Part shown: piece after piece, positions 2,215 through 51,600 of the stretch | Position numbering within the stretch: position 1 is the stretch's first letter | Layout: each line of letters starts with the position of its first letter | Source of the DNA: Macrostomum hystrix | Lineage: Eukaryota; Animalia; Platyhelminthes | Direction of reading: 5' to 3' | Assembly: GCA_950097015.1 (NCBI GenBank) | Contig: CATNEN010000012.1 | Location: 2,542,001-2,606,000, forward strand | Length of the DNA stretch: 64,000 nucleotides | Notes under the pieces: model-generated | Told to the model about the DNA's origin: nothing | Database searches by the model: none | Seen by the model: the letters and a program-made list of their open reading frames with translations, nothing else | Position numbers and translations under genes: made by a program

Positions 2215-3345
2215 CTAATCACTGTCAGAGTCACTGATACCGTCGGCTGTGTCGCGAGGCTGACAGCTTGCGCGCTCTACGTACTCGCCTTCGATGGAGA
2301 TGCACTTCTTGTAGCGCTCAATTAGCGCGTTGAAGCCAGCCTCCCAGAATTCAGCCTTCAGCTGACTAAGCGACTGATTGGTGGCATTGATGACTTCGTC
2401 ACGAGTTGAGAAGATCTGACCACGCAGAGGCATCTTCATCTTACCGAATAAATGAAAGTCAGCAATGGCGAGGTCAGGACTGTAGGCAGGATGATTTAGC
2501 AGGCGAAAGCCGAGCTCCTCCACCTTCGCCTTTGTGCTAGCAGCAGCATGAGGTCGCGCATTGTCCCAAAGAATAAACGGTTTCTGACGCATTATGCGGC
2601 GCTTGCTCAAAACTGCACTTCGCAGGCGATTCAGCTGATCCATTACGTAATCTGAGTTGATAGTCTGACCTTGTGGAACATAGTCAACCAGCAGCACTCC
2701 ACGAGCATCGAACCACACAGTGCACATCACATTTCGAGTCCAGGATGACTTCATTGCCTTCTGATGAGGATGGCGCCCCTTGGGTCCCCAGTGCATTGTC
2801 TGCTGCTTGGTTAACGGCTGGAACATGGGCAGTACAGTCTCATCCATCGTGATGGTCAGCTCCTTGAACTTGGTGTCTCCAAGCTCGTCCTACACTGCCC
2901 AATTCTCCAGCGCGCAACGCACTCTTGCCTTCTTGTGCTCTTCTGTAAGGTCACGTGGCACCCACTTGGCGCAGATCTTCGACCATCCTTCGCGTTTCAG
3001 AATGCGCCAGACAGAAGCGTAGGGTATGTCAAACTTGCTCTCTATTTCACGTAGCTTTGCCGATGGATTCTCTTCCAGGTAGGACAGCACAGCAGCGGCT
3101 GTGCCGGCGTCCGTACTGGAGCGTGGACGGCCTGATCGTGGAGCATCAGCAACACTAGTCGCACCTCCAGCAGCAAGTCGGTGATGGTCAAACACTTGCG
3201 ACCGACCTAACGCGTAGTCACCGAATGCTTGGCATGCCTCTGCAAACGTATGCGTCGCTGTCTTGCCTTGACATTGACATGCAATGATGAAGTGGCGCTG
3301 GCTGTGTTTTGACCCAAAGTCCGCGGAGTTGGTCGGTCGACTCAT
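2215..3345 (-). pseudogene. Mariner transposase interrupted by one in-frame TAG (2890-2892)
   Basis: ORFs 2890..3345 and 2215..2847 are in the same frame, separated by TAG plus 14 sense codons. Motifs: HTH region, RSGRP, WVPRDL (=WVPHEL), MDET, WDNARPH, YSPDLAIADF. There are 34 residues between the second and third Asp. Confidence 0.93.
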
Positions 3346-3501: not shown

Positions 3502-3752
3502 TTCATTTATTCGGTAAGATGAAGATGCCTCTGCGTGGTCAGATCTTCTCAACTCGTGACGAAGTCATCAATGCCACCAATCAGTCGCTTAGTCAGCTGA
3601 AGGCTGAATTCTGGGAGGCTGGCTTCGACGTGCTAATTGAGCGCTACAAGAAGTGCATCTCCATCGAAGGCGAGTACGTAGAGCGCTCAAGCTGTCAGCC
3701 TCGCGACACAGCCGACGGTATCAGTGACTCTGACAGTGATTAGGAGTGATCG
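3502..3752 (+). pseudogene. Inverted duplicate of the transposase C-terminus (part of the long inverted repeat)
   Basis: ORF 3519..3743 matches the last 74 aa of ORF 2215..2847 except FDV/FNA and ERSS/ERAS. Confidence 0.9.
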
Positions 3753-5896: not shown

Positions 5897-7123
5897 ATGG
5901 CAACTAGCAAAGGCCTGAAGATATTGGTTGGCTGCAAGCGTGTCATTGACTACGCTGTGAAGGTTCGCGTCAAACCAGATCGCACTGGCGTTGTCACTGA
6001 CGGTGTCAAACACTCAATGAATCCATTCGATGAAATCGCCGTCGAAGAGGCCGTCCGACTCAAAGAAAAGAAGCTAGCCTCGGAGGCCGTGGCCGTGTCT
6101 GTTGGCCCGCCCCAGGCCCAGGAAACTCTGCGCACAGCCCTGGCCATGGGCATCGACCGGGCCATTCACGTGGAGATCCCCCTAGCTGAGCTGGAACGGC
6201 TGCAGCCTTTGCACATCTCCAAACTGCTGGCCAAGGTGTGCGAAGCTGAGAAACCGGATCTGGTCATCCTGGGCAAGCAGGCCATCGATGGCGACTGCAA
6301 CCAGACTGGCCAGATGCTTGCCGCCCTGCTCGACTGGCCTCAAGCCACCTTTGCCTCCAAGATCGAACCCAGCAGTGTGAGTGACTCGATTTGGCATACT
6401 GCCTGCCTGCCTTTCCGGCCTGCCCTTACTATACTACTGCCTGACTGCCCTTCCTGTACTACTACCTGACTGCCCTTCCTGTACTACTACCTGACTGCCC
6501 TTCCTGTACTACTACCTGACTGCCCGTCCTGTACTACTGCCTGACTGCTCTTCCTGTACTACTACCTGACTGCCCGTCCTGTACTACTGCCTGACTGCTC
6601 TTCCTGTACTACTACCTGACTGCCCGTCCTGTACTACTACCTGACTGCCCGTCCTGTACTAAAACCTGGCTGCTCTTCCTGTACTACTGCCTGACTGCTT
6701 ATCTGGCCTGTCCTACCTGTGCTACTGCCTGTCTTTGGCCTGTCCTTCTGTACCACTGCCTACCCAGCCTTGTCTCTTTAAGTATCTAATTAGCGTGGAC
6801 CCACCCGTGCCGTACAGGACTCCAAACAGGTTCGCGTCATTCGCGAAGTAGACGGCGGCCTAGAAACGGTGGAAGTGTCAGTCCCAGCCGTTGTGACCAG
6901 CGATCTGCGCCTGAACGAACCCCGCTACGCCACTCTGCCCAACATCATGAAGGCTAAGAAGAAGCCTCTAACCAAGATGACCCCAGACCAGCTGGGCGTT
7001 GACCTCAAGCCTCGTCAAGAGGTTGTCAGCGTTGACGATCCGCCTGTGCGAAAGGCCGGAGCCAAAGTCGAATCGGTGACAGATCTGGTTGGCAAGCTGC
7101 GCGAGAAGGGCCTGGTTAAGTAG
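5897..7123 (+). CDS. ETFB: Electron transfer flavoprotein beta subunit; exons 5897-6376 and 6818-7123; 261 aa
   Basis: Contains [60 protein letters not shown] and [22 protein letters not shown]. The phase-0 GTGAGT...TACAG intron is 6377-6817. Confidence 0.97.
6431..6700 (+). repeat. ~25-bp minisatellite (CTGACTGCCCTTCCTGTACTACTAC) in the ETFB intron
   Basis: Tandem copies read directly. Confidence 0.9.
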
Positions 7124-7555
7124 GATTTAAAAATACGTCCAGTTTTATTCCCATATTAAACTATTAGTTGATGCTGCCCGTTGTTTGTTTGCCTGTTACC
7201 CAATACAAAGGAGAAAAATATGTGATTAGTTAACATTCTTCATTTGGCCATCACTGTTTCATTTATTAGAGTTGCGTATTGATCACTTAGAGGCTCGTTG
7301 ATATTTAAATTTGTTATGCTCTGTTATAACACTGCATGAGATGCTTTTAAATTTTATGGGCAAAATATAGACAGACTACAGTATCCTTTCCCTTTCTAAG
7401 ATAACTGGGCTCGACTGTCACCTCATTGCGATAGCGACGATCGAGTATAGACAAGTCCAATAAACCTGTCTCATGTACTTGTGTTTTAAACTTCCCACTT
7501 CCTCCAATACTGGCTCATTACGCCTACTCTCTCCCTATGTGAAGCCACCCATCAC

Positions 7556-8230
7556 CCTCATTTTCTCTCTCCACCGTGTGCAGCACCAACAACCCCATTT
7601 TCTCTCTCCCCGTGTGCAGCACCAACCACCCCATTTTCTCTCTCCCCGTGTGCAGCACCAACCGCCCCATTTTCTCTCTCCCCGTGTACAGCACCAACTG
7701 CCCCATTTTCTCTCTCCCCGTGTGCAGCACCAACCACCCTATTTTCTCTCTCCCCGTGTGCAGCACCAACCACCCCATTTTCTCTCTCCCCGTGTGCAGC
7801 ACCAACCACCCCATTTTCTCTCTCCCCGTGTGCAGCACCAACCGCCCCATTTTCTCTCTCCCCGTGTACAGCACCAACTGCCCCATTTTCTCTCTCCCCG
7901 TGTGCAGCACCAACCACCCCATTTTCTCTCTCCCCGTGTGCAGCACCAACCACCCATTTTCTCTCTCCCCGTGTACAGCACCAACTGCCCCATTTTCTCT
8001 CTCCCCGTGTGCAGCACCAACCACCCCATTTTCTCTCTCCCCGTGTGCAGCACCAACCACCCCATTTTCTCTCTCCCCGTGTGCAGCACCAACCACCCCA
8101 TTTTCTCTCTCCCCGTGTGCAGCACCAACCACCCCATTTTCTCTCTCCCTGTGTGCAGCACCAACCACCCCATTTTCTCTCTCCCTGTGTGCAGCACCAA
8201 CCACCCCATTTTCTTTCCATGTGCAGCACC
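7556..8230 (+). repeat. 36-bp minisatellite (ACCAACCACCCCATTTTCTCTCTCCCCGTGTGCAGC), ~18 copies
   Basis: Period 36 read directly. It explains the 12-aa periodic ORFs in all frames. Confidence 0.95.
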
Positions 8231-8818
8231 CACCACCTCAATTTTCCTTTCTAGGCGAAGCCACCCCATTTTGTGTAGCAAATTAGTATAGTTTTTTATA
8301 CGAAGTTCTTGTTTACTTACCTCTAACAGTTAGTCAGCGCAGCCAATTAAGGTGGAAAGAAGTTCTAATCTTAGGATTTTCGTATCTTTGGTATAGTAGC
8401 GTTTATATACTTTAATTTCGAAACTTCATCCTTATTTAGTAATTGATCGCTTAAAGTTAAAGTATTTTGTGCACAATAAAACGGCAGTGATTAGTCGTTT
8501 ATTAATAGAACTTGTCTGGCATCTGCTACGTTAATGGCTACCAAAATCTTAGTGAACGCTTTGATTGATTTACTGTTGTTATTTTACGTTTAGCATCGAT
8601 TTCTCTCGCCTAAAACTGATTTGTGTTTGCCGGTTGCCGCTCCGCCCCGTGCTGGGCATATACGCTCGTATAATTAGCAAGAAAAAATGCTGTTTGAAAT
8701 AAACTATGATCCTATCATGTAATTCTTCTTGTCGAACTTGCAAAAACATGTCTCGTTTCTATTTTTTAATTACTTGATAGCTATTTGGTTAGGTGAGATT
8801 GGTGAGAGACAGCTGACA

Positions 8819-8880
8819 GGCTGCGTACGGCAGTTCAGTCCATGGACTGGGGGTGCCACACCCGTCCTCAATTATACCCA
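8819..8880 (-). mobile_element. SINE 3' fragment (same family as 23537-23708 and 63838-64000)
   Basis: GGCTGCGTACGGCAGTTCAGTCCATGGACTGGGGGTGCCACACCC..TCAATTAT aligns with 63845-63900. Confidence 0.65.
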
Positions 8881-8929
8881 TTGAGACTTTTAACCATTTA
8901 ACTTTGCTTTAGTATCGACCCGCCAGTTT

Positions 8930-8975
8930 CTATTGGCTGAAAGCTGTCACGTGATAGGCAATTTCGTCCAATAGC
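8930..8975 (+). promoter_or_regulatory. Candidate NSA2 promoter: ATTGG/CCAAT boxes around an E-box (CACGTG)
   Basis: CTATTGG ~8930, TCACGTGA 8947-8954 and CCAAT ~8968 lie about 100-140 bp upstream of the first coding exon. Motif match only. Confidence 0.35.
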
Positions 8976-9070
8976 AATCAATGCGGGTAGTTGTTGCTAA
9001 TAGGAATGGCAGGATGATTACAAATTTCGCCCATAATTAATGCCCTTTATTTCGTCCGGCCAACCCGCAG

Positions 9071-11566
9071 CCGCAGAACGAGCACATCGAGCTTCACCGG
9101 AAGCGGCACGGCCGCCGGTTCGATTATGAAGAGAAGCAGCGCAAGAAGGAGGCCAGGCAGGGCCGGCTGCGCTCTAAGAAGGCGCGCACGCTTCGCGGCC
9201 TGAAGGCCAAGCTGTTCAATAAGGAGCGCCACAAGGAGAAGGTGCAGATGAAGAAGACACTCAGGGCTCACGATCAGCGCGACACGAAGCAGCGAGCGGA
9301 CGATCAGGCTGTGCCGGAGGGAGCCAAGCCGGTGTACCTGCTGGATAGGGAGGACCAGACTAGGGCCAAGGTCCTGTCTAATATGCTCAAACAGAAGCGA
9401 AAGGAGAAGGCAGGCAAGTGAATTTCACCTTCCAGTGCTTACAATCCTCCCCACACTCGGGAACAGCAGCCTCCCCACACTCAGGAACAGCAGCCTCCCC
9501 CCACTCAGGAACAGCAGCCTCCCACACTCAGGAACAGCAGCCTCCCACACTCAGGAACAGCAGCCTCCCACACTCAGGAACTGCAGCCTCCCCCCACTCA
9601 GGAACAGCAGCCTCCCACACTCAGGAACAGCAGCCTCCCACACTCAGGAACTGCAGCCTCCCCCCACTCAGGAACAGCAGCCTCCCACACTCAGGAACAG
9701 CAGCCTCCCACACTCAGGAACTGCAGCCTCCCCACACTCGGGAACAGCAGCCTCCCACACTCGGGAACAGCAGCCTCCCCACACTCAGGAACTGCAGCCT
9801 CCACACTCGGGAACAGCAGCCTCCCACACTCGGGAACAGCAGCCTCCCCACACTCGGGAACAGCAGCCTCCCACCCAATCGGGAACAGCAGCCTCCCCAC
9901 ACTCGGGAACAGCAGCCTCCCCACACTCAGGAACTGCAGCCTCCCACACTCGGGAACAGCAGCCTCCCCACACTCAGGAACAGCAGCCTCCCCACACTCG
10001 GGAACAGCAGCCTCCCCACACTCAGGAACTGCAGCCTCCCACACTCAGGAACAGCAGCCTCCCACACTCAGGAACAGCAGCCTCCCCACACTCGGGAACA
10101 GCAGCCTCCCCACACTCGGGAACAGCAGCCTCCCCACACTCGGGAACAGCAGCCTCCCCACACTCGGGAACAGCAGCCTCCCACACTCGGGAACAGCAGT
10201 CTCCCACACTCGGGAACAGCAGCCTCCCACACTCGGGAACAGCAGCCTCCCACACTCGGGAACAGCAGCCTCCCACACTCGGGAACAGCAGTCTCCCACA
10301 CTCGGGAACAGCAGCCTCCCACACTCGGGAACAGCAGCCTCCACACTCGGGAACAGCAGCCTCCCACACTCGGGAACAGCAGCCTCCCCACACTCGGGAA
10401 CAGCAGCCTCCCACCCAATCGGGAACAGCAGCCTCCCCACACTCGGGAACAGCAGCCTCCCCACACTCAGGAACTGCAGCCTCCCACACTCGGGAACAGC
10501 AGCCTCCCCACACTCAGGAACAGCAGCCTCCCCACACTCGGGAACAGCAGCCTCCCCACACTCAGGAACTGCAGCCTCCCACACTCAGGAACAGCAGCCT
10601 CCCACACTCAGGAACAGCAGCCTCCCCACACTCGGGAACAGCAGCCTCCCCACACTCGGGAACAGCAGCCTCCCCACACTCGGGAACAGCAGCCTCCCCA
10701 CACTCGGGAACAGCAGCCTCCCACACTCGGGAACAGCAGTCTCCCACACTCGGGAACAGCAGCCTCCCACACTCGGGAACAGCAGCCTCCCACACTCGGG
10801 AACAGCAGCCTCCCACACTCGGGAACAGCAGTCTCCCACACTCGGGAACAGCAGCCTCCCACACTCGGGAACAGCAGCCTCCACACTCGGGAACAGCAGC
10901 CTCCCACACTCAGGAACAGCAGCCTCCCACACTCAGGAACTGCAGCCTCCCACACTCAGGAACAGCAGCCTCCCACACTCAGGAACTGCAGCCTCCCACA
11001 CTCAGGAACTGCAGCCTCCCACACTCAGGAACTGCAGCCTCCCCCCCAATCGGGAACAGCAGCTGTAATTCAATGTCGCACTGTACATTACAAAATCGTG
11101 ACCATCCCGAATCCTGTCTGTCGCAGGCAAATGGGATGTGCCCATCCCGAAGGTGCGCGCCACATCCGAGGCTGAAGCGTTCCGCGCCCTCCGATCCGGC
11201 AAGTCGAAGCGCAAAGCCTGGAAGCGGATGGTCACCAAGGTCACATTCGTGCCCGACGGATTCACTCGCAAGCCGCCAAAGTACGAGCGCTTCATCCGGC
11301 CAACTGGCCTTCGTTTCAAGGTCGCTCACGTGACACACCCGGAGCTGAAGGCCACATTCCAGCTGCCACTGCTAGGAGTCAAAAAGAATCCAACATCTCC
11401 GCTGTACACCAGCCTGGGCATCATCACCAAGGGCACAGTGATCGAAGTGAATGTGAGCGATCTTGGCCTAGTGACCCAATCCGGCAAGGTTGTGTGGGGC
11501 AAGTATGCTCAGGTGACCAACTGTCCGGAGAATGACGGCTGCATCAATGCCGTGCTGCTCGTTTAG
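9071..11566 (+). CDS. NSA2: Ribosome biogenesis protein NSA2; exons 9071-9413 and 11127-11566; initiator Met not contiguous
   Basis: [27 protein letters not shown]...[26 protein letters not shown]|[12 protein letters not shown]...[32 protein letters not shown]...[11 protein letters not shown]. The phase-1 intron 9414-11126 has an AG|GCAAGT donor. Confidence 0.96.
9449..11062 (+). repeat. 22-23-bp minisatellite (CACACTC[A/G]GGAAC[A/T]GCAGCCTCC) filling the NSA2 intron
   Basis: About 70 units, including a 540-bp higher-order duplication. Confidence 0.95.
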
Positions 11567-45600: not shown

Positions 45601-48600
45601 TTACAGGTTGATGAGAAGACAGGGGTCTCTCACAGGTCAATGAGAAGACAGGGGTGTCTTACAGGTTAGTGAGTAGACAGGGGTGTCTTACAGGTTAGTG
45701 AGAAGACAGGGGTGCCTTACAGGTTAGTGAGAAGACAGGGGTGCCTTACAGGTTAGTGAGAAGACAGGGGTGTCTTACAGGTCAATGAGAAGACAGGGGT
45801 GTCTTACAGGTTGATGAGAAGACAGGGGTGTCTTACAGGTTGATGAGAAGACAGGGGTGTCTTACAGGTTGATGAGAAGACAGGGGTGTCTTACAGGTTG
45901 ATGAGAAGACAGGGGTGTCTTACAGGTTGATGAGAAGACAGGGGTGTCTTACAGGTTGATGAGAAGACAGGGGTGTCTTACAGGTTGATGAGAAGACAGG
46001 GGTGTCTTACAGGTTGATGAGAAGACAGGGGTGTCTTACAGGTTGATGAGAAGACAGGGGTGTCTTACAGGTTGATGAGAAGACAGGGGTGTCTTACAGG
46101 TTGATGAGAAGACAGGGGTGTCTTACAGGTTGATGAGAAGACAGGGGTGTCTTACAGGTTGATGAGAAGACAGGGAGTGGTGCCTAGCAGGTCGATAAGA
46201 AGAAAGGTAAAATTTTTGGGTCAATGAAAGTGTTATACATTCATACAGCTTTAGGGAGCGACTTTAACAGTGGACAACAACAAGGCCGACTAAGGGATTT
46301 TATGGCTGCGAAAATTCAACACTGTTCTATCGTATACTATACACTGTAGAGCGAGGGGTACAGAGCATGCGCTTGAAGGTTTATAAAAAGTGACCTAGTT
46401 CTGCAATAATTTTATTAACTAATGGCTTCATTTTGCAAGTTGACAGACTGAATTATTTGTTATTCGTATTGTTGTTCAAATATAAATTAATGTAGGTAGT
46501 CGTTAAACTTTAGGACGAGTCTAAACTACTACTGACACGCATGATACATGGCTTGCTCGAAACTCAAGTATATTTTGCAAATAAGTGAAAAATTAAAACA
46601 AAAACTTTTTTGATCAAACGAACTTACGTTGCACGATGAGTTCCGTTTGAACAGGCGAATAAACTGTCTGCCTAGTGATAGGATTGGTTGCTAGGCAACC
46701 ATACAGCTTGCCGCCGCCGTCGTCAAGCAGCACTTTGCCGATGATGAGTGCGAATGAGCCTGTTGCGAGGCGCACAACTCGATATCGATCTGGGGATAAT
46801 TGCAGGTAGGCAGGAGAGCATTCGCTTGTTTATTTGGCTTCTTAATGAAGGCTTAAACATTGTGACAGGTAGTACATGATAATTTTTATAGCTGACAATA
46901 AACAGGAATACCATTTTTGGGGTTATTCACACTGAATAGGAATAGCATTTTTGGGATTATTCACACTGAATAGGAATACCATTTTGGGATCATTCACACT
47001 GAATAGGAATACTATTTTTGGGATTATTCACACTGAATAGGAATACCATTTTTGGGATCATTCACGCTGAATCGGAATACCATTTTTGGGATTATTCACG
47101 CTGAATCGGAATACCATTTTTGGGATTATTCACACTGAATAGGAATACCATTTTTGGGATTATTCACACTGAATAGGAATACCATTTTTGGGATTATTCA
47201 CACTGAATAGGAATACCATTTTTGGGATCATTCACACTGAATAGGAATACCATTTTTGGGATTATTCACACTGAATAGGAATACCATTTTTGGGATTATT
47301 CACACTGAATAGGAATACCATTTTTGGGATCATTCACACTGAATAGGAATACTATTTTTGGGATTATTCACACTGAATAGGAATACCATTTTTGGGATTA
47401 TTCACACTGAATAGGAATACTATTTTTGGGATTATTCACACTGAATAGGAATACCATTTTTGGGATTATTCACACTGAATAGGAATACCATTTTTGAAAT
47501 TATTCACACTGAATAGGAATACCATTTTTGGGATCATTCACACTGAATAGGAATACTATTTTTGGGATTATTCACACTGAATAGGAATACCATTTTTGGG
47601 ATTATTCACACTGAATAGGAATACCATTCTTGGGATCATTCACACTGAATAGGAATACTATTTTTGGGATTATTCACACTGAATAGGAATACCATTTTTG
47701 GGATCATTCACACTGAATAGGAATACCATTTTTGGGATTATTCACACTGAATAGGAATACTATTTTTGGGATTATTCACACAGAATAGGAATACCATTTT
47801 TTGGATCATTCACACTGAATAGGAATACTATTTTTGGGATTATTCACACTGAATAGGAATACCATTCTTGGGATCATTCACACTGAATAGGAATACCATT
47901 TTTGGGATCATTCACACTGAATAGGAATACCATTTTTGGGATTATTCACACAGAATAGGAATACCATTTTTGGGATCATTCACACTGAATAGGAATACCA
48001 TTTTTGGGATTATTCACACTGAATAGGAATACCATTCTTGGGATCATTCACACTGAATAGGAATACCATTTTTGGGATCATTCACACTGAATAGGAATAC
48101 CATTTTTGGGATCATTCACACTGAATAGGAATACCATTTTTGGGATCATTCACACTGAATAGGAATACCATTTTTGGGATCATTCACACTGAATAGGAAT
48201 ACCATTTTTGGGATCATTCACACTGAATAGGAATACCATTTTTGGGATCATTCACACTGAATATAGTAGGAATACCATTTTTGGGATTATTCACACACAC
48301 AGAATAGGAATACTATTTTTTGGGATCATTCACACTGAATATAGTAGGAATACCATTTTTGGAATTATTCACACTGAATAGGAATACTATTTTTAGGGAT
48401 TATTCACACAGAATAGGAATACCATTTTTGGGATCATTCACACTGAATATAGTAGGAATACCATTTTTGGGATTATTCACACACACAGAATAGGAATACT
48501 ATTTTTGGGATCATTCACACTGAATATAGTAGGAATACCATTTTTGGGATTATTCACACTGAATAGGAATACCATTTTTGGGATTATTCACACTGAATAG

Positions 48601-51600
48601 GAATACCATTTTTGGGATCATTCACACTGAATAGGAATACCATTTTTGGGATCATTCACACTGAATATAGTAGGAATACCATTTTTGGGATTATTCACAC
48701 TGAATAGGAATACCATTTTTGGGATTATTCACACTGAATAGGAATACCATTTTTGGGATCATTCACACTGAATAGGAATACCATTTTTGGGATCATTCAC
48801 ACTGAATAGGAATACCATTTTTGGGATTATTCACACTGAATATAGTAGGAATACCATTTTTGGGATTATTCACACTGAATAGGAATACCATTTTTGGGAT
48901 TATTCACACTGAATAGGAATACCATTTTTGGGATCATTCACACTGAATAGGAATACCATTTTTGGGATCATTCACACTGAATAGGAATACCATTTTTGGG
49001 ATCATTCACACTGAATATAGTAGGAATACCATTTTTGGGATTATTCACACACACAGAATAGGAATACTATTTTTTGGGATCATTCACACTGAATATAGTA
49101 GGAATACCATTTTTGGAATTATTCACACTGAATAGGAATACCATTCTTGGGATCATTCACACTGAATAGGAATACCATTTTTGGGATCATTCACACTGAA
49201 TAGGAATACCATTTTTGGGATCATTCACACTGAATAGGAATACCATTTTTGGGATCATTCACACTGAATAGGAATACCATTTTTGGGATCATTCACACTG
49301 AATAGGAATACCATTTTTGGGATCATTCACACTGAATAGGAATACCATTTTTGGGATCATTCACACTGAATATAGTAGGAATACCATTTTTGGGATTATT
49401 CACACACACAGAATAGGAATACTATTTTTTGGGATCATTCACACTGAATATAGTAGGAATACCATTTTTGGGATTATTCACACTGAATAGGAATACCATT
49501 TTTGGGATTATTCACACTGAATAGGAATACCATTTTTGGGATCATTCACACTGAATAGGAATACCATTTTTGGGATCATTCACACTGAATATAGTAGGAA
49601 TACCATTTTTGGGATTATTCACACTGAATAGGAATACCATTTTTGGGATTATTCACACTGAATAGGAATACCATTTTTGGGATCATTCACACTGAATAGG
49701 AATACCATTTTTGGGATCATTCACACTGAATAGGAATACCATTTTTGGGATTATTCACACTGAATATAGTAGGAATACCATTTTTGGGATTATTCACACA
49801 AAGAATAGGAATACTATTTTTAGGGATCATTCACACTGAATATAGTAGGAATACCATTTTTGGGATTATTCACACACACAGAATAGGAATACCATTTTTA
49901 GGGATCATTCACACTGAATATAGTAGGAATACCATTTTTGGAATTATTCACACACACAGAATAGGAATACTATTTTTTGGGATCATTCACACTGAATAGG
50001 AATACCATTTTTGGGATCATTCACACTGAATATAGTAGGAATACCATTTTTGGGATTATTCACACACACAGAATAGGAATACTATTTTTTGGGATCATTC
50101 ACACTGAATATAGACTTAGGAATACCATTTTTGGGATTATTCACACACACAGAATAGGAATACCATTTTTAGGGATCATTCACACAGAATAGGAATACTA
50201 TTTTTGGGATTATTCACATCGAGCAGGAATATATTCTTTGGGGTAATCCAGTATTTGGTTAATGAAAGCTAAAGAAACTTCACATAAAAGCGATGAAAAT
50301 TTTAATTATTCATTAAAATTCAAAGTACAACAGTTAACAAAGAATGGCTGCATGCTGATAAGGACTTTTGGTTTTGTTTGCAATAAATTGATCCCGGCAA
50401 AAATGGTTTTGAAAGCGATAAAAAAACACGGACGCTGTTCAATACAATTATGGAATGGAATATTTGAAATTGAATAATCGAGATCAAGCCAGGTTTATAT
50501 AAGTACTTTGTAGTTCAATGCTTTAACAGTTTCAAATAGGTATTTCAAATAGCCACATTTTATTTTTTTCTGTATCTCCTAAAATATTCAACCAATCGCC
50601 ATAAAATCCAGAGCACGGGCTAAAATATTCAACCAATCGCCATAAAATCCAGAGCACGGGCTGAAAATTTCCGCTCCATCCGATGAAACACCTTCCAGAA
50701 TCACTAAACATCGGCATCGTCGGGATATTCAACGATTCTCGTCGGTCTGTATCCACGGCGAGGCCACATTTATTTGGGGCGCGGCCGCGGAGGGAAGGCT
50801 TGGGGGCTGGTCGTGCAATTCACGCCATTGAGGGCAAACCTCCAAGGCACAGTGATAGTTGTACACTGCCTGACGATGAGAAAGTCAGGGCAGATGTACA
50901 CACCTGTGTGAGTGTGTGCCTGCGTACAGTATCTGTGTGCGTGTGTGCTCAGGTGTCAGCGAAATCGGCCTTGTGTCACTAAATGATCACTAAATGTGTC
51001 ACTATATGGTGGACTTTCACGAAAATCGGTCATTCGGTTTGGGAGCTACTGTGAAGTGGGCAGTTGGTATTTGAAATTCCCCTCGTGGTGTTTCGCCAGG
51101 GGGAGGAAATAGTGTGATCTTTCTGCTGTTAAGAGAAAATGCGCTTGAAGAAGAAGCCCCACAAAAAATCCTAAATTATCCCCTCTCTAAAAAACCACAA
51201 AAGTCGACGACACAAACGGCAAAAGGAAAATATTTAACAAAAAGTAAAAATGGGAAGCAAGGAAATTCGTTTAACTACATTTAGACAATGAAATAGTTGC
51301 GTTAAACTAATCAGACAACAGGGCGTGGCCGATGGCGACTGAGCAAGTCACGGCGAATAACTTACCTCGCGTGGTTCGGCTAGATAACACTGTCAGGGTT
51401 AGGGGATAAGAAATTACATGCTATTGAAATACAATAGGCTTTGATGAGCGCCTTGCCACAATCCTGGACATCAGTCACTGGCTCATTGCTGTACCGCTGC
51501 TTAATGATTTAAACTTAACTAGAAGACATGACAGGAGGATAAGAGGAAGGGCCAGAGGAAGGATAAAGGAAGGATAGAGGATAAAGAAAGGGTAGAGGAT

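Follow-up and report, generated by a model that had tools for sequence, protein, structure and literature searches.

Work on schistosomes has established that a spliced leader (SL) can bring its own start codon to a flatworm messenger RNA. Cheng, Cohen, Ndegwa and Davis (2006) described the AUG of the Schistosoma mansoni leader as an initiator methionine, according to the passages on that work in PMC12582326, PMC9851317 and PMC5832876. The summary given in PMC9851317 adds that 28% of trans-spliced S. mansoni transcripts have the leader AUG in frame and that more than 40 cDNAs require it (Cheng et al., 2006, J Biol Chem); according to the relevant passage of PMC12582326, ATG forms the end of every parasitic-flatworm leader reported.

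The Macrostomum leader and widespread trans-splicing in this genus are also already known (PMC5730564, PMC8629364). In Macrostomum lignano, about 30% of genes carry the SL (CGGTCTCTTACTGCGAAGACTCAATTTATTGCATG), which derives from an SL RNA gene of 109 bp that includes a GTAAG donor and an Sm site (PMC8629364). The leader sequence is highly conserved across the genus (PMC10468722) and contains a single ATG, at positions 33-35, which is named as a likely start codon in the passage on the leader in PMC10468722, a paper that covers the genomes of Macrostomum cliftonense and M. hystrix. Trans-spliced genes and operons have been counted in PMC5730564, PMC8629364 and PMC10468722, and the start-codon passages of these three papers give no figure for genes that need the leader for their start codon. 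A literature search for NSA2 together with ‘spliced leader’ found no paper. Here, we describe an NSA2 gene in a 64-kb stretch of Macrostomum DNA (the whole of the sequence analysed, hereafter the window) and compare it with these systems.

The gene was identified exon by exon through PDB and Pfam scans. Exon 1 (9071-9413, + strand), which holds codons 2-115 and the first base of codon 116 and has no ATG of its own, was delimited by its translation, its PDB match and transcript contigs. Its translation aligns with solved human and fungal NSA2 chains over the whole exon, with E-values from 1.6e-42 to 4.5e-24; the match to the human chain (8fkr_NF, E 1.6e-42) covers residues 2-116 and aligns the first query residue with chain residue 2, a register shared by three fungal NSA2 chains. 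Exon 2 (11127-11566, + strand, with a TAG stop at 11564-11566) matches residues 116-260 of human NSA2 (E 1.9e-79) and the Pfam family Ribosomal_S8e (PF01201; 3.1e-32). This end-to-end similarity to the NSA2 of solved pre-60S particles identifies the product as the ribosome-biogenesis protein NSA2 / TINP1, with its Ribosomal_S8e fold. As the two exons together cover human residues 2-260, only Met1 is missing from the DNA of the gene: NSA2 is a two-exon gene whose DNA begins at codon 2. The N-terminus in all four solved NSA2 orthologues, yeast and human among them, is MPQNE.

In the genome, the codons CCG CAG AAC GAG (PQNE, 9071-9082) lie directly 3′ of ..CAACCCGCAG, with its AG at 9069-9070, and the sequence around the acceptor reads ..GTCCGGCCAACCCGCAG/CCG CAG AAC GAG CAC ATC.., with the CCG at 9071. 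The reading frame 5′ of the acceptor is closed by a TAA at 9038-9040 (+ strand), the first in-frame stop upstream of 9071, and a scan of the + strand found no in-frame ATG between that stop and 9071. The string ATGGT is absent from the + strand between 5219 and 11228, so no ATG/GT exists from the stop of the upstream ETFB gene (7123) to 9070. With PQNE directly behind an acceptor, the frame closed by TAA and no ATG/GT in 7123-9070, the claim of an earlier, sequence-only reading that NSA2 has no contiguous start codon is borne out.

The search for a cis-spliced start exon took in every + strand ATG in 7124-9070, 19 in total, together with any GT or GC donor in phase 0 behind it. Start exons of the form ATG/GC occur in this interval only at 8534 (GCTACC) and 9006 (GCAGGA), and were rejected as both have poor donors; a contig from run X1 (8494-8736) is collinear with the genome across 8534. 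The only listed candidate near the acceptor is the ATG at 8981, to which we return below.

Transcript evidence came from assembled contigs of four public runs (X1, X2, X7 and X8) from two studies (P1 and P4) under three organism codes, aligned to 8250-9445; such contigs drop rare variants and hide RNA ends, and the RNA label of each run is the guess of the index. Ten runs in the run index match 8700-9420, each with 0.39-0.47 of sampled words, which is about the share of that interval taken up by exon 1. Each of the four runs yielded one contig on 9070-9417, and contigs in all four cover exon 1 with 0-1 differences.

At their 5′ ends, the contigs from all four runs carry non-genomic letters, ..CTGCGAAGACTCAATTTATTGCATG. 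These loose ends are 20-24 nt long (..CTGCGAAGACTCAATTTATTGCAT), agree fully among the four runs (agreement 1) and are followed by G and then CCGCAGAAC, giving a leader that ends in ATG joined at 9070/9071. Overhang plus G is identical to the final 25 of the 35 nt in the published M. lignano leader; the G at 9070 coincides with the last G of the leader and the alignment therefore starts at 9070. The ..TTGCAT of the overhang, completed by that G, reproduces the ..TTGCATG with which the published SL ends, and the leader seen here is thus AUG-terminated. Leader and NSA2 RNA are joined at this AG acceptor, at 9070/9071, in four runs and two studies. The sequence-only reading had predicted such a junction between a leader AUG and 9071 and had proposed a search for non-genomic leader sequence ending in ATG at that position; carried out on the contigs, the search found it in every one of the four runs. 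With up to 3 mismatches allowed, a search of the 64-kb window found no leader sequence, so the leader comes from elsewhere, in trans. At the other end of the contigs, the 3′ loose ends (ATGGGATGTGCCC.. and ATGGGATGTGCCCATCCCGAAGGTGCGCGC) occur once in the window, at 11131; as the contigs run on into exon 2 without the intron, they represent spliced RNA.

The trans-splice acceptor (9043-9070, + strand) consists of a pyrimidine-rich stretch, CCCTTTATTTCGTCCGGCCAACCCGCAG, with its CAG at 9068-9070, and the contigs switch from leader to genome at 9070/9071. Its last six bases, CCGCAG, fit five of the six positions of the [T/C]TNCAG motif of M. lignano trans-splice acceptors (PMC8629364). The same CCGCAG (9065-9070) repeats codons 2-3 (CCG CAG) in tandem, the two copies together spanning 9065-9076, and this duplication may be a trace of how the acceptor arose. 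The second CAG (9074-9076) is a possible in-frame alternative acceptor that would give M-NEH..., and the contigs use the first only.

The single cis intron of NSA2 spans 9414-11126 (+ strand; CAG/GCAAGT ... TCGCAG/GCAAAT) and is best read as a GC-AG intron. Across the joint between exons 1 and 2 the mRNA contigs read ..GGCAGGCAAATGGGATG and ..GAGAAGGCAGGCAAATGGGATG, and the genome reads CAG/GCAAGTGA at 9413/9414 and TGTCGCAG/GCAAATGGG at 11126/11127. The donor is placed at 9414 because, among pairings that match the contigs, an AG acceptor is found only with a GC donor, which has the classic GCAAGT context; a GT donor at 9418 would need an AA acceptor and was hence rejected. CAG/GCAAGT together with CAG/GC reproduces the contig sequence, as belongs to the GC-AG class (a U2-type minor donor class). 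Exon 1 thus ends at 9413, at a GC donor, and not at 9417/9418. Much of the intron is a tandem array of a 23-bp unit (9450-11063; about 69 copies, 1.6 kb).

The contigs show that NSA2 pre-mRNA receives the Macrostomum SL, the last three bases of which are AUG, by trans-splicing at the CAG acceptor whose final base is 9070. The mature mRNA reads ..UUGCAUG/CCG CAG AAC GAG, with the only AUG of the leader in frame and abutting Pro2, and leader AUG and gene codons together would encode a predicted product of 261 residues (leader Met counted) that starts with MPQNE, as in yeast and human. We hold this account, in which the leader AUG supplies Met1 of NSA2, to be very probable. The leader AUG stands in frame with the conserved ORF, no genomic ATG is able to serve, and the next in-frame AUG after the leader junction is codon 60 (Met60, ..KVQMKK..). 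We infer that ribosomes start at the leader AUG because the mature mRNA holds no other AUG upstream of codon 60, because residues 2-59 are strongly conserved and because flatworm leader AUGs are documented initiators in published work. The context of this AUG, with U at -3 and C at +4, is weak by a vertebrate-style standard and counts against it. A minor cis-spliced or unspliced NSA2 isoform would be compatible with the contig data.

Other origins for the N-terminus can be weighed against the same evidence. The sequence-only reading had itself offered a cis micro-exon, ATGCGG/GTAGTT (8981-8986, + strand; ATG at 8981-8983, CGG at 8984-8986), which would be spliced over an 84-nt intron to 9071 and give MRPQNE. 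On that view, the leader-joined form would be a by-product. This micro-exon is indeed present in the genome, in phase and with no stop intervening, but in each of the four runs 8890-9049 has a contig depth of zero and no joint from 8986 to 9071 is reported, and the contigs therefore lend it no support; in every run, the leader sits on the dominant contig. Its donor, GTAGTT, is a poor fit to the GT[G/A]AG consensus (PMC8629364), the additional Arg would disrupt the M-P-Q-N-E register that the four solved orthologues share, and with CCAAT and an E-box directly upstream, position 8981 may be untranscribed. Taken together, we regard a start in this micro-exon as very unlikely.

Doubts of another kind concern the leader itself. 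If it were added but its AUG, whose Kozak-type context is weak and whose distance from the cap is 33 nt, were skipped, translation would begin at Met60 and yield an N-terminally truncated NSA2; yet residues 2-59 are close to those of human and fungal NSA2, as expected only if they are translated, and flatworm SL AUGs are used according to the passages on them in PMC12582326 and PMC9851317, which leaves such skipping with little likelihood. Nor do the contigs by themselves separate cis from trans, and the leader-like 5′ end might in theory be a cis exon far upstream of the window rather than a trans-spliced SL. That would require a sequence identical to the leader of about 30% of M. lignano genes to derive from something other than the known SL RNA gene and to lie beyond a 64-kb window that holds no copy of it, with ETFB on the same strand just upstream of NSA2, and we judge it extremely improbable. 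The donation of Met1 by a trans-spliced leader remains our preferred reading.

Upstream of NSA2, a promoter-like cluster (8932-8972, + strand), read from the sequence, places ATTGG (8932-8936), an E-box CACGTG (8948-8953) and CCAAT (8968-8972) within 41 nt, some 100-140 nt 5′ of the trans-splice acceptor, in the manner of ribosome-biogenesis genes. It may represent a promoter belonging to NSA2 itself; if so, the outron would measure less than about 100 nt, and transcription may start 3′ of the ATG at 8981. Alternatively, NSA2 might form an operon with ETFB. ETFB (5897-7123, + strand) has its own ATG at 5897 and an intron array of a 25-bp unit at 6420-6698. It ends 1.9 kb from NSA2 on the same strand, and 720 bp of the gap is a tandem array; with that array subtracted, the distance is near the 1 kb that PMC8629364 takes as its operon threshold. 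Neither the promoter nor the operon reading alters the conclusion on the leader AUG.

Between ETFB and NSA2, low-depth contigs collinear with the genome cover 8250-8746 in all four runs. Their source could be a polycistronic precursor of ETFB and NSA2, a long 3′ UTR of ETFB, an independent transcript or carried-over DNA. Further along (8818-8853) lies a 36-nt motif with a 14-nt palindrome, CAGTCCATGGACTG; single-copy in the window, it recurs on both strands in dozens of otherwise unrelated RNA contigs, with a summed depth of up to about 5500, and probably belongs to a dispersed, transcribed repeat as its conserved core. Over 7000-9500, Rfam returned only a chance-level mir-2_2 match (21 bits against a cut-off of 94, E 0.52), and at gathering scores no Rfam family and no tRNA was found in the whole 64-kb window.

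Introns and intergenic spacers in the window are repeatedly occupied by minisatellites: about twenty distinct arrays lie between 6400 and 56800, with periods of 11-66 bp, the largest measuring 3.3 kb (46904-50218), in agreement with reports that the M. lignano genome is rich in tandem repeats. A mariner/Tc1-type transposase ORF (2215-3345, - strand; Pfam Transposase_1 and DDE_3) has another ORF upstream on the same strand. On the opposite strand, a 74-aa ORF (3519-3743, + strand) is near-identical to the C-terminal end of that transposase, and the pair looks like a nested or rearranged element.

The donation of a start codon by a leader has been known as a mechanism in flatworms since 2006, and NSA2 is a further example, with nothing new in principle. 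Its value lies in being a clean, RNA-supported case of an essential 60S-assembly factor whose full translation is impossible without trans-splicing. We think it rather likely that NSA2 belongs to a large class of conserved Macrostomum housekeeping genes whose genomic start codon has been lost and whose translation obligatorily requires trans-splicing. If that is true, trans-splicing would be an essential translational step for hundreds of genes, not an optional modification of the 5′ end, and pipelines that trim the whole leader, including its final ATG, before ORF calling would tend to mis-call N-termini; the authors of PMC10468722 retained the leader ATG to avoid annotation problems. For Macrostomum annotation, the NSA2 case means that models made after leader trimming lose Met1 or start falsely at Met60, and a leader-supplied AUG also matters for the design of transgenes with such promoters.

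Set beside the systems described previously, the NSA2 case shares with the S. mansoni SL an AUG-ending leader, an AG acceptor and an in-frame Met1 for a conserved protein without a genomic start, but involves another lineage (the free-living Macrostomorpha), another leader and another gene. Translation from the leader AUG has been experimentally tested in Schistosoma, whereas here we infer it from the RNA junction and the sequence. The correspondence is closest with SL trans-splicing in M. lignano (Wudarski et al., 2017, PMC5730564; Ustyantsev & Berezikov, 2021, PMC8629364): the 35-nt leader is the same, exact over the 25 nt seen, the acceptor is likewise a CAG, and NSA2 belongs to the housekeeping class reported to be enriched among trans-spliced genes. 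The slORFs of nematodes, Oikopleura and trypanosomes (PMC9851317) similarly have their start codon in the leader rather than in the gene. In the account that PMC9851317 gives of them, many slORFs have a length other than that of the annotated frame or overlap it in a different frame, whereas in NSA2 a canonical AUG from the leader would give an essential protein back precisely its ancestral N-terminus.
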